Positions 3,038 through 43,805 of a stretch of DNA of 64,000 nucleotides are shown here, piece by piece. Each line of letters opens with the position of its first letter. Position 1 is the first letter of the stretch. Under the pieces are notes generated by a model. That model was not told the DNA's origin. It did no database searches and saw only the letters and a list, made by a program, of their open reading frames with translations. This stretch comes from Pelomyxa schiedti. Lineage: Eukaryota; Protista; Evosea. Position numbers and translations under genes: made by a program. The stretch spans positions 1 to 64,000 of the forward strand of contig JAHLWZ010000854.1 of NCBI GenBank assembly GCA_020536535.1, given 5' to 3'.

Positions 3038-5212
3038 ATGGACATAGGCGATGTGATCAGGAAAATAACGTGCCCTTGTTGTTCCTCTTTCTTTCGTGAC
3101 CCAAGGTGCCGTAAATTTGGAATATGTCCTTTAAACCTATTCGTGTTTCCAAACGTCCTCACGCCTGACTCACACCACCAGGCTCCTGCCGTGTTTGCAC
3201 ACTTTGTGCCTCGAGTGCATCACTCGATGCGCGCAATATTCGCCCGGACCTCGACCTCGGCGACGAGTCCCACCCCACCAACATCAACAGTGACGTGCCC
3301 TGTGTGCCACTCTCAGGTCCTTCTCCTCCTACAAAGCAACAACCGAAAAATCGTCAGGCCACTGTCCCCCAGGGGGGTGCCCTGTCGACTGCTGGACGAG
3401 CACCCTGCTCGTTGTTGGGGGTGGGTCACAGCCGCAATGCCCCACAACTGCCGCCGCGCCTCCGCCCGAGTGTTCTGAGTGCGGTTCGCACGACGCCCCG
3501 TGGTGGTGCACATCATGCAGCGCGTTCCTGCATCCACATGAGGAGTTGCTACTGTATTGCAACACTGACAAGTCACCGATTTGTCGTGGCTGCACGTGTG
3601 TGCCTTTTTCTCTTTTGTTAAACACCAAACATTCTATCAGGAAGATCGACCACAAAAACCACGACTTCGTTGTTGTCAGTGACCTGAGCCCAAAGTTCAA
3701 GGAGAACATTTCATCACTTAGTGCCAAGTTGTCATTGCTTCTGGAGAAGGTTTCACTGTCTAAACTCACCGCAATTGTGCGTTCTCGTCCGAATTTATTG
3801 TGAAATGACATTTAAACCACAAACAACAAGGGGTGTTGCAAAAACGCAGAAGAAGCTTCAGAGAAAGTCAAGTCAGAAATACGAACTGAATTTGCCAAGA
3901 TTGTTGCTGTTGTCAATGCCAGGGAGGCTCAACTGCTCTCAGAAGTGAATACAATCACAGAGACTTCCAAAAAGGCATTGTTCTTGTCCCGCGCAATTCA
4001 CACTGACCCTCTTTCAAGACATTCCAAGAAAGCATTGAAGGATGCGACAACAAGACGAAGGTTTTACAGGAGACACAAGAATACGCACAACAGGCAACAA
4101 CGAAGTTCACTGACCTCCAACTTGTGGCTGTCAATGGCACTCTCACACCTCGTCTCAAAAAACTTTGCGATTCTGGTGCTGATACTGAGGCTCTCACACC
4201 AACCGAATTGAAGGCACGTTGCAGTTGCTCTAACCGACTTTGGTTTTTATGCTAATCACTGTACCACCTACGCAACAACAAACAGGTGAGTTTTGAGTGC
4301 GATTCAGATACTATTTGTGAGACAGTTTCATCCCTTGGGTGTCTTGTTCACAATTCATCGGGATGCGGTCTAATCGCAAAGACAACAGCACCTACCACGA
4401 TGAAGACACTCAGACAACTTGCCGCGCCAACGATGGTGCCCTCGATCACACCCCGTCAGGCAGTCAGGCTGTTTGTTGACAACGCAACCGGGAAAGTGTA
4501 CTGGGACAACGGCTTCAACCGCCCACAACTGACAGAGTTCGAAAGCATGACCAGCTTCGTCAACAACACCAACCCGAGACAGTTCACACTCAAGGACGTG
4601 CCCGGCTGCCCCGAAGGCACGTTCCTGGCGGTGCACAACGGCCACGTGTACTGCAACCCAATCAACGAAGCCACGATGACCAAGGTGCGTGTGAGTGACG
4701 GGTCAACAGCAGCAACTGCCCGGCTCCCAAACGCCGGCCACTCTGGCCTGTCGTCGTGGGACTGGCATGGATACAGTGACATGTCCTGGTATGTCGATGC
4801 AGGGGGTGTGCTGTACGTGATCCACGCACCACCAGACAACGGCAACATACATATCACGAGGGTGGACCCCGACTCCCTCGCAATCTTGCAGACGTGGGTG
4901 GTGCCCCGCGTCAAGACACGGACTGGCTTTGCATTTGTTGTGTGTGGGAAGTTCTACTTTGGAAAGTCATGCCGCAGCCAGGAGATCGACGGGGTGTTTG
5001 ACACCACAACTGGTGTTTATGATGACACTTACAGAAACTCACTCCCATCATCACGTGGCGGGTGCGTAGTTCTGACATCGTGGATTCCGTCAACAAACCA
5101 GCTCCTCATCATAGACTTCCCTCCTGAGGGCACAAGGTACCGCTTTTTCATCTTTGACAATGCTGTTGTAAACACACGGGGACAATACCCACAAAGCCAC
5201 AACAACGCCTAA
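3038..5212 (+). pseudogene. TRIM-like RING-B-box-coiled-coil-olfactomedin gene, copy 1; 5' part disrupted, OLF exon 4286-5212 open
   Basis: Colinear with copies at 17161-19497 and 41447-43805. Has a frameshift inside the RING exon (in-frame TGA 3291-3293), a 1-nt loss near 3366-3377, and an in-frame deletion at 3530/3531 fusing B-box1 to B-box2 (SAFL|HPHEE). Confidence 0.7.
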
Positions 5213-17160: not shown

Positions 17161-19497
17161 TTACAAGGCACTGCCCATCTCAGTCACATTGTCAAAGAAG
17201 AAAAAGCTGAATTCTGGTCGGTCAGAAGAGCGGTCAATGACGAGGAGCTGGCTTGTTGATGGAATCCACGACGTCAGCCTCACGTACTTGCCGGATGTCG
17301 GGAGTGAGTTTCTGTAAGTGTCATCATAAACACCAGTTGTGGTGTCAAACACCCCGTCGATCACCCTGCTGGCGTATGTGTTGCCAAAGTAGAACTTCCC
17401 ACACACAACAAATGCAAAGCCAGTCTGTGTCTTGATTCGAGGGACAGTCCACGTCTGCAAGATTGCGAGGGAGTCGGGGTCCACCCTTGTGATGTGTATG
17501 TTGCCGTTGTCTGGTGGTGCGTGGACCACATACAGCACACCCCCTGAATCAACATACCAGCAAATGTCCGTGGCTCCACCCCAGTCCCACGTTGATTTGC
17601 CAGTGTGGCCGGCGTTTGGGAGTGGTGCAGTTGCGACTGTTGACCCGTCACTCACACGCACCTTGGTCATCGTGGCTTGGGTGTATGGGGTGCAGTACAC
17701 GTGGCCGTTGTGCACGGCCTGGTATGTGCCGCCGGGGTAGTGGGGCACGTCCTTGAGTGTGAACTGCCTTGGGTTGGTGTTGCCGACGAAGCTGGCCATA
17801 TTTTCGAACTCTGTCAGTTGTTGACGGTTGAGGGCGTCGTCCCAGTACACTTTTCCAGTTCCGTTGTCAACAAACAGCCTGTGAGCATGACGCGGTGCGA
17901 TCGAGGGCACCATTGACCCCAGCTGTTTGAGTGCCTCCTTCATTGCGGTTGCTGCTTTGGGAATAAGAGTTGATGTTGAGTTGCGAACAATGCGCCCAAG
18001 TGATGAGATTGTTCCACAAACGGCAGTTGAGTCACATTCAAGTCTCACCTGTCCGATTTTGAGTCATTTTACATTTTTGTGGAAACATATACCTTGAATT
18101 CACTCTCGGCACCTGAGTCGCAAAGGTTTTTGACACGAGAAGTGAGAGTGTCATGGACAGCCACAAGTTGGAGGTCGGAGAACTTCGTTGTTGCGAGTTG
18201 TGCGTATTCTTGTGCCTCTTGTGCAGCCTTCGTTTTGTTGTCGCATCCTTCGATGTGTTCTTGGAATGTCTTGCGGGATAAGTGAGTGAAGTTTGGGAGC
18301 AGAGGATAAAAACAGCCCACTTTTTTCGCGGTTTCAGTGATTGTCTTCAGCTCCGATAGCAGCTGTGCCTCCCTGGCATTGACAACAGCAACAATCTTGG
18401 CAAATTCAGTTCGTATTTCTGACTCCACTTGTTTTGAAACTTCATCTGCGGTTTTTAAACACCCCTTTGTCGTTTGTTTAAAACGCCAATGATGGAAATG
18501 GAAGACACACAATTGCGGTGAGTTTCGAATGTGAAATCCTCTCCAGGTGCAATGACAACTTTGAACAGAGTGTGGCTACATTTTCCTTGAATTTGGAGCT
18601 CAGGTCAGAAGAAAACACGAAATCGTGGTTCTTGTGGTCAATCAATCTGATAATGGTGTTTTGATGTTTGTGTAACTGCATAAAGGGTGGTCTCAAGGAA
18701 CACACGTGCAATCACGGCAGATCAATGACTTGTCAGTGTTGCAATACAGTCGCAGTTCCTCATGTGGATGCTTGGAACAAAGTGACGGTTTGGGTGCAGT
18801 GGGTGTGACAGTTGTCTGTGCCCTGAGTTGATCCACAGTCACAACCTGCATCCATGTTAACGAATTGGTACATAACCAGGTGGGGGCGGGAGACAGAAAT
18901 AGACATTGTGAGAAGCAGTCCTCCACGCACGCGAGTGGTGAGCCTTGTCGTCGTCGCACAGGAATACGCTGCACGACGCGCACCACCACGGGGCGTCGTG
19001 CGACCTGCAGTCTCCGCACTCGCGCGGGGGCGCGGCGGCCGTGGTGCCTGGCGGCTGTGATGCGCCCCCAACAGCCGCAAGTGGAACCAGGGCTAACAGG
19101 CTGGTCTTCCATAAGTCCACAGGGAACCCGCCGCTGGGAATTGGTGCCTGTTTGGCGTTAGCACTCGTTTTTTTGCAACTGCAGCAGTGCACAGACGGAC
19201 ACCTGGGAGTGACACACAGGGCACGTCATGGTTGATGATGAGGGCGACGAAGCAGTGGAAGACGTGGAATTAGGCGTAGAGGTTCCTTGTGAACATCGAG
19301 TGATGCACTCGAAACACATACTGTGTAAACACGGCAAGAGCCTGGGGAAGAAAACAAAAAAAAAAAAAAAAAAAGGGCTTAGAACCCCTTCCTTCCCGAG
19401 TACGAGATCAATGGTCTCTGCTGACTAACCTTGGATCACGGAGGAACAAGGAGCAGCGCGGACAAGTTACTTGCGCTATCACTTCCTTCTTGTCCAT
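17161..19497 (-). CDS. TRIM-like RING-B-box-B-box-coiled-coil-olfactomedin protein, copy 2 (apparently intact)
   Basis: RING (CPRC...LLPCLHSMCFEC...CPVC), B-box1 (CGDC...CASC...C...HH), B-box2 (CSKH...C...C..C...H), coiled coil; last exon has OLF motifs LPNAG, WGG.TD, NGNIHITRVDP..L.I.QTW, AFVVCG, FDT.TG. Confidence 0.85.
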
Positions 19498-41446: not shown

Positions 41447-43805
41447 ATGGACAAGAAAGAATTGATCGCACAGATAACCTGCCGTTGTTGCTCCTCGTTC
41501 TTCCATGAACCAAGGTTGAACTGCCGTTTTCTTTTCCCAAGTTGACGCCCACAAGGCTCTTGCCGTGCTTGCACACCTTGTGCCTCGACTGTGTCACACG
41601 CTGTTCCTCGCGTACCACAAGCACGACAACCCCGACCGGCGTGTTGCCCACTTTTTCCGTGACGTGCCCCGTGTGCCACTCCCAGGTCAGCGATGTGCCC
41701 TTGTGTGCTTTGTGGGTCAAATAACTCAACAAAAGCAAACGCCAAACAGGCCACAGTCCCACCCGGCGGATTCGCAGTCGACGTCTGGAAGAGCAGCCAG
41801 CTGGATACGCTGGCGCCAATCATAGCAGGTTGCGGGCCACAATCGCCGCCACCAGGCACCACGGCCACTCCCCCGCCCGAGTGTGCCGAGTGCAGGGCTC
41901 ACGACGCCCCGTGGTGGTGCGCGTCGTGCAGCATGTTCTTGTGCAACGACGACATGGCGCACCACTCACGTGCGTGGAGGACGGCTTCTCACAAGGTACT
42001 TCTTGAAAAAAAAAAAAAAAACAATTCCCTCAACCTTATTCACTCCATGCGTGGATGTGGATACAGGTTGTGACGGTGGATCAACTCAGGACACAGACGG
42101 ACGCTGTGTCTCCCATGTCGTACAAACCGGCACTGTGTTACAAGCACCCGCAAGAGGAGCTCCTGTTTTATTGCAACACTGACCACTCGCTGATTTGCCG
42201 TGATTGCACGTGTGCCACTCTCTGTCTTCCTGTGCTTTTACTTAATGGGCGGTATACATCGTTCAGGTTGGACGACCACAAGAACCATGACTTTGTTGTC
42301 TCCATTGACCTGAGCTCCAAATTCAAAGAGAACATTGGTTCACTCTGTTCGATGTTGGTATCGCACTTGGAGAAGGTTTCGCTTTCGAAACTCACTGCAA
42401 TTGTATGTGCCGTCCCTTCTCGTGGGACTTCTTCCATTCTTGTTCAATCTATTAGCCATCCTAAGACAATCAAGGGGTGCTGCAAAAACGCTGAAGAAGT
42501 TCAAGAAAAAGTGGAGTCAGAAATACGAACTGAATTTGCCAAGATTGTTGCTGTTGTCAATGCCAGGGAGGCACAGTTACTCTCGGATCTTAAGGCAATC
42601 ACAGATTCCGCAAAGAAGGTATGTTTCTGCTGTCGGGCCAGAGCCATCACGATGTTTGATGTCCCACTGACAATTTTTACACTTCAAGACATTCCAAGAA
42701 AACATTGAAGGATGCGACAACAAGATGAAGGTTGTACAAGAGGCACAAGAATACACACAACTGGTAACAACGAAGTTCACTGACCTCCAACTTGTGGCTG
42801 TCAATGACACTCTCTCATCTCGCGTGAAAAAACTTTGCACTGACGTTCCAACACCCAATAATTTGAAAGTATCAAGACTTTTCTTCTGTTTGAAAGCTGC
42901 TCACAACCAAACAATAGGTGAGATTTGACTGTGAGTCAGCTGCTATATGTGGAAAAATCTCTTCGTCACTCGGACGTCTTGTTCACAATTCAGCAGCAGC
43001 AGGCACCCTTATTACTGCCAAATCAACACTGATGATGAAGACACTCAAACGACTTGACACATCGATGGTGCCCTCGGTCACACCCCGTATGGCACAGAGG
43101 CTATTTGTTGACAACGCAACTGGGAAAGTGTACTGGGACGGTGGCTTCAACCGTCCACAACTGACAGAGTTTGCAAACATGGCCAGCTTCGTCAACAACA
43201 CCAACCCGAGACAGTTCACACTCAAGGACGTGCCCGCTTTCCCCGAGGGCCCTTACCAGGCCGTGCACAACGGCCACGTGTACTGCACCCCGTTATTCAC
43301 ACCCACGATGACCAAGGTGCGTGTGAGTGACGGGTCAACAGTCGCAACTGCACCACTCCCAAACGCCGGCCACTCCAGCAGCTCAGCGTGGGACAAATGT
43401 TGTTACTCGGACAACTGCTGGTATGTTGATGCAGGGGGTGTGCTGTATGTGGTCCACGCACCACCAGACAACGGCAACATACACATCACGAGGGTGGACC
43501 CTGACAACCTCGCAATCTTGCAGACGTGGGTGGTGCCCCGCGTCAAGAAGACCACTGGCTTTGCATTTGTTGTGTGCGGGAATTTCTACTTTGGCAAGGC
43601 ATCGAACAGCAGGGAGATCGACGGGGTGTTTGACACCACCACCGGTGTTTATGATGACACTTACAGAAACTCACTCCCGACTTCGGGCACGTTCATTCTT
43701 CTGATTTCTTGGATACCATCCACAAACCAGCTCCTCGTCGTCGACTGTCACCCTGAGAACTTCGATAATTGCTACGTTTTCCTGTTTGACGATGTGGCTC
43801 TGTGA
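41447..43805 (+). CDS. TRIM-like RING-B-box-B-box-coiled-coil-olfactomedin protein, copy 3 (apparently intact)
   Basis: Exons join in frame through GT-AG introns at the same positions as copy 2; OLF exon 42918-43805. Confidence 0.85.

Follow-up and report, generated by a model that had tools for sequence, protein, structure and literature searches.

TRIM-type proteins with a C-terminal olfactomedin propeller in the amoebozoan Pelomyxa schiedti

We analyzed a stretch of 64,000 nucleotides from the amoebozoan Pelomyxa schiedti (hereafter the window), which lies at the start of a contig of 72,443 bp (JAHLWZ010000854.1; G000:C854) in a 52-Mb eukaryotic assembly. A minus-strand locus at 17161-19497 encodes a protein in which a RING finger, two B-boxes and a long coiled coil (together RBCC), the scaffold of tripartite-motif (TRIM) proteins, are followed by an olfactomedin (OLF) beta-propeller. 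The locus belongs to an RBCC-OLF family that, judged from sequence, comprises some 15 to 20 genes in P. schiedti. We consider it probable that this is a family of cytosolic, dimeric ligases of the TRIM type, in which an OLF propeller of bacterial type is the target-binding head and paralogues differ in the top face of that propeller.

Pelomyxa proteins of this type are already public in GenBank, where they were automatically named 'TRIM71' or 'Olfactomedin-like domain'. An earlier note on this DNA had proposed an undescribed non-animal class; the host is indeed an amoebozoan and we found no paper describing such proteins, but the sequences themselves had been deposited. Literature searches on olfactomedin with TRIM or B-box returned no description of a TRIM-OLF protein or of an intracellular OLF domain, and the genome paper mentions olfactomedin and ubiquitin nowhere (PMC8887013). 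What is new is OLF as a C-terminal class on a known TRIM scaffold, in an unexpected lineage.

Gene structure, domains and fold

The focal locus corresponds to GenBank entry KAH3745893.1 (P0006), a protein of 644 residues annotated as 'E3 ubiquitin-protein ligase TRIM71 [Pelomyxa schiedti]'. Gene models of this species were predicted with Augustus and refined by PASA/EVM with single-cell transcriptomes (PMC8887013). When the 295-aa last exon served as query for a full HMMER scan, P0006 proved identical to it over residues 350-644, and the complete protein maps without mismatch to eight minus-strand exons running from 19497 to 17164, separated by seven GT-AG introns of 44-88 bp (boundaries set at codon level, +/-2 nt). 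Whole-protein analyses used this public model, and the remaining analyses were made exon by exon. P0006 encodes a RING, B-box1, B-box2, a long coiled coil and an OLF domain, in that order; the same order had been read by the earlier note and is borne out by Pfam, the public model, the exon mapping and the zinc ligands. P0006 has no hydrophobic N-terminus or membrane-like segment by a simple hydropathy check made without a dedicated signal-peptide predictor, as the RING lies at the N-terminus and the highest Kyte-Doolittle mean over 19 residues is 1.4. This agrees with the earlier call of no signal peptide, and we infer that the protein is cytosolic.

The identity of the last exon is clear from both sequence and predicted fold. 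Pfam OLF (PF02191) matched the 295-aa exon with E 7.9e-27 and P0006 with E 4.7e-26 (aa 412-619), scoring 92-95 bits against a gathering cut-off of 23.9. A sequence search of all Protein Data Bank (PDB) chains with this exon returned OLF chains only, with noelin best (3.7e-23) and then myocilin, latrophilin and gliomedin. An AlphaFold2 model of the domain, built with a 56-sequence alignment as input, reached a mean predicted local distance difference test score (pLDDT) of 90.3, with strands consistent with five four-stranded blades; the N-terminal stretch of the exon was modelled at pLDDT <50. In a Foldseek comparison with the PDB, the best 50 matches were all OLF structures at a TM-score of about 0.8 by target. 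NHL or another propeller as a better fit to the exon is ruled out, because the PDB sequence matches and the best 50 fold matches are all OLF.

Most Pelomyxa copies have a cysteine at the position of noelin C409, which forms the animal OLF disulfide C227-C409, and two further conserved cysteines lie at the start of the OLF exon, in the stretch modelled at pLDDT <50. In P0006 these cysteines are residues 355, 361 and 566 (window 18030-18045 and about 17398-17400, minus strand). The Myxococcota relatives described below have Asn or Gly at the corresponding positions.

The N-terminal half of the protein is a TRIM scaffold. On P0006, Pfam identified B-box2 with E 1.8e-11 (aa 169-207) and a C3HC4 RING at aa 12-66, the latter (zf-C3HC4) at 21.7 bits against a cut-off of 21; scanned exon by exon, the B-box scored E 1.4e-7 and the matches to B-box1 and the RING were weak. 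An alignment (A3) that sets 20 animal-type TRIMs beside five Pelomyxa paralogues shows every zinc ligand of the RING, B-box1 and B-box2 to be invariant. Among 5.8 billion database sequences, the nearest relatives of residues 1-345 outside Pelomyxa were animal TRIM-NHL and TRIM33/TIF1 proteins, with 25-30% identity over 80-97% of the region and E down to 1e-25. The RBCC model (pLDDT 81) shows a RING, two B-boxes, a single helix at 209-319 and a return helix, and its best PDB match was the KAP1/TRIM28 tripartite motif, over 340 columns with E 2.6e-10. Further fold matches were TRIM72, the TRIM5alpha B-box/coiled coil and TRIM2 RING-E2 complexes, and the B-box1 part matched tandem B-box structures. 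Between zinc ligands 6 and 7 the RING carries a Ser/Thr-rich insert (aa 40-60; window 19215-19295, minus strand) that was modelled at pLDDT <50 and varies in sequence among paralogues.

Structure prediction also suggests how the scaffold would assemble. A homodimer prediction for aa 165-350 gave an ipSAE interface score of 0.59 compared with 0.00 for the best control, with at least 89% contact agreement between runs and a partner pLDDT of at least 84. In benchmarks, the ipSAE mark was passed by 21 of 30 solved homodimers and none of 23 solved single chains from microbes and by only 17 of 29 cases from eukaryotes, so the pass may reflect memory of solved TRIM structures. The predicted contacts pair residue i with approximately 537-i, so that the two chains would run antiparallel through the coiled coil about a dyad near residue 268, as they do in TRIMs. 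The result supports a likeness to TRIM dimers, and the dimer of the Pelomyxa protein is a predicted one.

The family extends well beyond the focal locus. Genome-wide, 15 contigs (the longest >418 kb) carry at least 23 OLF matches between them, and at least 14 of these loci carry B-box and coiled-coil exons upstream; their OLF exons are 49-78% identical to the focal copy. In the window, the earlier note had seen three copies of one layout, each with two B-boxes. This description fits the focal locus and the copy at 41447-43805 and fails for the one at 3038-5212, because its B-box1 and B-box2 halves are fused (Table 1). That copy has lost about 42 residues and one intron in frame (window 3440-3560, plus strand), so that the first half of B-box1 joins the second half of B-box2, while the second half of B-box1, the linker and the first B-box2 cysteine are gone. 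Another locus (L012 1297-3168, on G000:C575) has two adjacent OLF exons, the second of which is split between two reading frames and is thus probably a broken duplicate.

B-boxes abound in this genome: of 309 candidates, at least 150 are B-box matches. Two loci (L031, C966:3000-6200; L033, C926:35000-38000) have an open reading frame (ORF) with RING, B-box1 and B-box2 followed on the same strand by a Sel1-repeat ORF, and the RBCC regions of the OLF and Sel1 subfamilies are only 23% identical. Other Pelomyxa B-box loci, in spot checks, consist of long B-box1-B-box2 ORFs with no recognisable C-terminal domain.

Table 1. Exons of the focal gene and further RBCC-OLF copies on the same contig
Feature	Position	Strand	Content	Basis
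Exon 1	19426..19497	(-)	aa 1-24; start codon and first RING Cys pair C12, C15	Exact P0006 mapping; ligands invariant (alignment A3)
Exon 2	19203..19337	(-)	aa 25-69; remaining RING: C27, H29, C32, C35, C63, C66; Ser/Thr-rich insert between ligands 6 and 7	Pfam, mapping, alignment A3
Exon 3	18902..19147	(-)	aa 70-151; linker and B-box1: C113, C116, C125, C128, C133, H140, H149	Mapping, Pfam, alignment A3
Exon 4	18705..18842	(-)	aa 152-197; first part of B-box2: C173, H176, C185, C193, C196	Pfam zf-B_box E 1.8e-11 on P0006
Exon 5	18511..18645	(-)	aa 198-242; end of B-box2 (H201, H204) and start of long helix	Mapping; modelled helix 209-319
Exon 6	18321..18464	(-)	aa 243-290; coiled coil including predicted dimer dyad near residue 268	Mapping, models
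Exon 7	18090..18269	(-)	aa 291-350; end of coiled coil and return helix 322-342	Mapping, model
Exon 8	17161..18045	(-)	aa 351-644 and stop; linker of ~55 aa, then five-bladed OLF propeller	Pfam OLF, model pLDDT 90.3, PDB fold matches, conserved acceptor
Paralogue P0169, 634 aa	41447..43805	(+)	Same 8-exon RBCC-OLF layout, GT-AG introns 44-88 bp; RBCC 66%, OLF 71% identical to focal copy	Exact mapping
Paralogue with hybrid B-box	3038..5212	(+)	RING, one hybrid B-box, coiled coil, OLF; OLF exon 4286-5212	tblastn alignment to P0006
Fourth RBCC-OLF copy, presumably P0170 (656 aa)	G000:C854:70187-72443, same contig, just beyond the window		OLF 57% identical

Calcium site and origin of the propeller

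Noelin binds Ca2+ and Na+ through D356, E404 and D453 (PMC6857237). In the focal OLF domain the corresponding residues are C163, F211 and S260, and the three window copies have C/S/C, F and S at these positions, so that our alignment agrees with the assignment the earlier note had made by eye. The same three positions in OLF domains of the Myxococcota type read 'DIC', then Y/F/W, then Y/S, and the acidic ligands are likewise absent. In contrast, animal OLF domains, and metagenomic ones found behind MopE-like or Stig1-like Cys-rich repeats, keep acidic residues at most positions. The earlier note had regarded the Ca-free site as fitting a cytosolic propeller. We reject it as a cytosolic adaptation, because the nearest bacterial relatives, which are secreted or lipoproteins, lack the same three acidic ligands; as far as sequence comparison goes, the Ca-free state is a trait inherited within an OLF group that includes secreted bacterial proteins.

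Four metagenomic, apparently bacterial proteins combine OLF with MopE-like repeats (P0041, P0068 and P0085) or Stig1-like repeats (P0050), and their OLF domains score as animal-like, with Pfam E about 1e-70. At the first two Ca-ligand positions all four are conserved, and only two of them have an acidic residue at the third. Taken with the Myxococcota proteins, these sequences suggest that bacteria may have two types of OLF domain.

The closest relatives of the Pelomyxa OLF domain are bacterial, which corrects the earlier view of OLF as mainly an animal domain. The best matches outside Pelomyxa were metagenomic proteins and a protein from a Myxococcales metagenome-assembled genome (MAG) with Stig1-like Cys-rich repeats ahead of the OLF domain, at 44-46% identity and E 1e-45 to 1e-53; the best animal OLF match had 31% identity. 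A scan of prokaryotes (one genome per species, using an alignment of eight sequences, A2) yielded three loci, all in Myxococcota MAGs (Polyangium, Myxococcales and Polyangiales) and 40-41% identical, whose ORFs start with a signal or lipoprotein-like sequence as judged by eye.

We also built a maximum-likelihood tree of OLF domains. The Pelomyxa copies formed one clade, with a support of 100 in the Shimodaira-Hasegawa-like approximate likelihood-ratio test (SH-aLRT), nested in a group of 26 rows (SH-aLRT 91) that also holds the Myxococcota proteins and a BTB-BACK-OLF clade including the rhizarian Mataza sp. D1. The named animal OLF sequences lie in the other half of the tree. The approximately unbiased (AU) test does not reject a placement of Pelomyxa on the side of the animal-type OLF domains (p 0.335), so this position is likely but not proven, and the kinship with the bacterial type rests on identity, E-values, the shared ligand losses and the one branch with SH-aLRT 91. 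Pelomyxa probably acquired its OLF domain from bacteria, a direction of transfer that we infer from these comparisons.

Variation among paralogues and competing explanations

To compare the faces of the propeller we aligned 14 near-full-length paralogous OLF exons, counting BC and DA loops as top and AB and CD loops as bottom. In noelin, a 'switch loop' (AGYNNMYHYAWGGH) joins blades 2 and 3 and is part of the top face, and the same loop is the contact of latrophilin-3 for FLRT3 (PMC6857237). This loop aligns with residues 146-159 of the focal OLF domain, which form its most variable loop. Among the 14 paralogues, mean column entropy reached 1.25 in top loops, compared with 0.62 in strands and 0.51 in bottom loops (Mann-Whitney p about 2e-6). 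For the closest pairs, Nei-Gojobori ratios of nonsynonymous to synonymous change (dN/dS) were 0.9-1.6 in top loops and 0.14-0.36 in the rest of the propeller; dS was comparable in the two partitions, so recent gene conversion by itself does not account for the conserved blocks. Since most differences between copies fall on the face by which olfactomedins bind, the propeller probably selects its targets through the varied top face, a predicted function. This pattern is the one expected of a recognition module and is in line with the earlier suggestion that OLF would be used here as PRY-SPRY is in animal TRIMs.

In the account we favor, the RING would recruit a ubiquitin-charged E2, and two molecules would pair antiparallel, like animal TRIMs, through their two B-boxes and the roughly 110-residue helix. 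The five-bladed OLF domain, at the position held by NHL or PRY-SPRY in animal TRIMs, would bind a target through its top-face loops. A Ca-free OLF domain may have been captured from bacteria and then fused to a TRIM scaffold, after which duplication would have diversified the top-face loops and given each paralogue its own specificity.

Several points weigh against this account. We obtained no spliced RNA from the locus: the runs that hold most of it (X1-X3) are DNA, since their contigs run through the introns, and the lone contig from an RNA library (18907-19134) lies inside exon 3 and ends in adapter sequence, making it uninformative on splicing and possibly carried-over DNA. Some public models annotate the OLF exon alone (P0001, P0003 and P0009), and this exon has an in-frame Met 24-53 codons in, as expected if the RBCC exons and the OLF exon were adjoining but separate genes or expression units. 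Yet in at least 14 of the 22 OLF loci that we fetched, the OLF exon is preceded on its own strand by exons for B-box1, B-box2 and the coiled coil, always in this order, most of the other loci being cut by contig ends, and six full-length public models (634-656 aa) join the two parts. An AG|GTG acceptor immediately precedes the conserved coding part of the OLF exon in 13 of 14 paralogues, and AG|GTC takes its place in the 14th; in ten of the 14 there is no ATG between the upstream stop and the acceptor, and purifying selection acts on the roughly 44 conserved residues ahead of the first Met, with dN/dS about 0.45. The OLF-only models lie on contigs of 1.2-1.5 kb or, for P0009, at a locus (L013) where upstream RBCC exons were detected. 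At another locus (L009) one open frame runs from the last coiled-coil exon across the intron into the OLF exon, and a ciliate protein with B-box1, B-box2, coiled coil and OLF is encoded by one uninterrupted ORF of 638 aa. The sequence evidence argues for a single gene joining RBCC and OLF exons, and we hold an annotation artefact to be very unlikely. That the locus stems from an animal or a bacterium in the culture is more improbable still, to the point of being negligible. The genome was indeed sequenced from single cells after amplification, and their culture was polyxenic and polyeukaryotic (PMC8887013), but four copies share one 72-kb contig, both mapped copies have the short GT-AG introns, the OLF matches are spread over many contigs, and no close match exists outside Pelomyxa (OLF <=46%, RBCC <=30% identity). 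Three DNA runs also contain the locus; the records assign them to a single sample, so they do not replicate it independently.

Other points concern function. A true RBCC-OLF fusion could have a catalytically dead RING and act as an oligomeric adaptor, for example resembling an autophagy receptor or sequestering its targets. The disordered, Ser/Thr-rich RING insert of about 27 residues, the Pfam RING scores at or below gathering thresholds and a ciliate relative without any RING fit such a scaffold, and inactive RINGs are reported among animal TRIMs (PMC11992055). Against it, the eight RING zinc ligands are invariant across the Pelomyxa paralogues and animal TRIMs, modelled helices flank the RING core as in dimerising TRIM RINGs, and the RING region matches structures of TRIM2 RING-E2 complexes; we consider a pseudoligase unlikely. 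We give somewhat less credence again to a recently expanded family under weak constraint, whose loop variation would be drift with no particular role in recognition. Top-loop dN/dS is about 1 and not clearly above, a value that would result from relaxed constraint or equally from positively selected sites mixed with constrained ones, and decay is visible in broken or truncated loci (L018, L019, L022 and the second OLF in L012) and in the fused B-box of the copy at 3038-5212. Such decay does not sit well with purifying selection on the RBCC and the rest of the propeller (dN/dS 0.14-0.36 at dS 0.2-0.3), with bottom-face loops conserved as much as strands, or with variation concentrated on one face that includes the ligand-binding loop of animal OLF domains. 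The faces themselves were set by the strand order of the model, anchored on one published loop and not by coordinates, and this, like the SH-aLRT and AU results for the Myxococcota-type grouping, also tempers our preferred account of a dimeric ligase family with a bacterial-type OLF head.

Relation to known systems and significance

The animal TRIM-NHL family (TRIM71/LIN-41, TRIM2, TRIM3 and TRIM32) is a close parallel in layout, as its members place a target-binding beta-propeller at the C-terminus, behind RING, B-box1, B-box2 and coiled coil; they also provide the best non-Pelomyxa sequence matches to the RBCC. Unlike their six-bladed NHL propeller, that of Pelomyxa is a five-bladed OLF domain, there is no filamin domain, and the host is an amoebozoan. 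We reject the GenBank name as evidence of TRIM71 orthology, as Pfam finds no NHL or filamin match and the C-terminus is OLF. TRIM5alpha and TRIM21 (RBCC-PRY-SPRY) share with the Pelomyxa proteins an antiparallel coiled-coil dimer (predicted here), a C-terminal recognition domain with variable surface loops, and a B-box/coiled-coil fold match. Their C-terminal fold differs, however, and for the Pelomyxa family our analysis gave no evidence of a lattice, an antiviral function or proven positive selection. KAP1/TRIM28 is the best structural match to the whole RING-B-box1-B-box2-coiled coil model but is nuclear, ends in PHD-bromo and has a sequence identity of only about 17%. Outside animals, including Amoebozoa, the only TRIM-type genes reported are TRIM37-like (PMC3503706; PMC5758549), and Dictyostelium has one TRIM gene, which is TRIM37-like and lacks the MATH domain (PMC5758549). 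Whereas TRIM37-like genes combine a single B-box with MATH, the Pelomyxa genes have two B-boxes and OLF and form a large family.

On the side of the propeller, the animal olfactomedins noelin, myocilin, latrophilin and gliomedin share the Pfam domain and five-bladed fold with Pelomyxa, and noelin and myocilin also have a coiled coil before OLF. These animal proteins are secreted or extracellular and have a Ca2+/Na+ core and a conserved disulfide, whereas the Pelomyxa protein has no signal peptide, has all three acidic ligands replaced and is 20-31% identical to them. Myxococcota proteins with Cys-rich repeats and OLF (P0014, MSP62909.1; L028-L030) are the nearest OLF relatives outside Pelomyxa, at 40-46% identity and with the same three Ca-ligand losses, including 'DIC'. 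They differ in being bacterial, in their signal or lipoprotein-like N-termini and Stig1-like Cys-rich repeats, and in having no RING, B-box or coiled coil.

OLF domains also sit at the C-terminus of ubiquitin-system adaptors or TRIM-like scaffolds in other protists. Protein P0021 of the rhizarian Mataza sp. D1 (MMETSP) and protein P0023 are independent fusions of BTB-BACK with OLF, and they group with two shorter OLF proteins (P0017 and P0040; SH-aLRT 97). This arrangement mirrors the BTB-BACK-Kelch substrate adaptors, a CUL3-adaptor layout in which OLF takes the usual place of Kelch. Mataza falls in the OLF group of Pelomyxa and differs from it in having a CUL3-adaptor-type N-terminus in place of the RBCC. 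In a ciliate, a B-box1-B-box2-coiled coil-OLF gene (P0104; L024 1-2117) without RING occupies a 2.1-kb gene-sized chromosome of 58% GC with C4A4/G4T4 telomeres at both ends, and assembly GCA_003202625.1 has two such genes in tandem (L023 116-2032 and 2215-4083); its B-box/coiled coil is only 20% identical to that of Pelomyxa. We found no paper citing the ciliate assembly. Among the 150 best OLF representatives, a phmmer and motif search found RBCC only in Pelomyxa proteins, along with one ciliate protein with B-boxes. A search of the ESM Atlas by features and shape returned no large cluster joining RING or B-box to OLF, although small clusters cannot appear there, so absence is not shown. The rhizarian BTB-BACK-OLF and ciliate B-box-OLF proteins make a substrate-receptor role for OLF in protists more plausible.

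These findings bear on the distribution of two protein modules. Full TRIMs with RING, B-box1, B-box2 and coiled coil have been treated as an animal feature; in this amoeba B-boxes are greatly expanded in number, and its TRIM scaffold can be aligned over the whole length with those of animals. OLF has been studied as an extracellular, Ca-binding animal module, and in Pelomyxa a Ca-free, bacterial-like OLF domain occurs in a protein without a secretion signal. In all, OLF is attached to ubiquitin-system scaffolds in three distant protist lineages. Pelomyxa is hard to manipulate experimentally. The conserved framework and variable top loops of its paralogues lead to a direct hypothesis on the ligand-binding surface of OLF domains, a question relevant to myocilin and noelin. 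More tentatively, it is conceivable, if doubtful at present, that this bacteria-feeding amoeba has a diversified set of cytosolic sensor ligases with OLF heads taken from Myxococcota-like bacteria, and that the top-face loops of each paralogue were selected for recognition of microbial, viral or endosymbiont targets, in which case they would form an innate-immunity-like system that arose outside animals, and other protists may have converged on OLF as an E3 substrate receptor.

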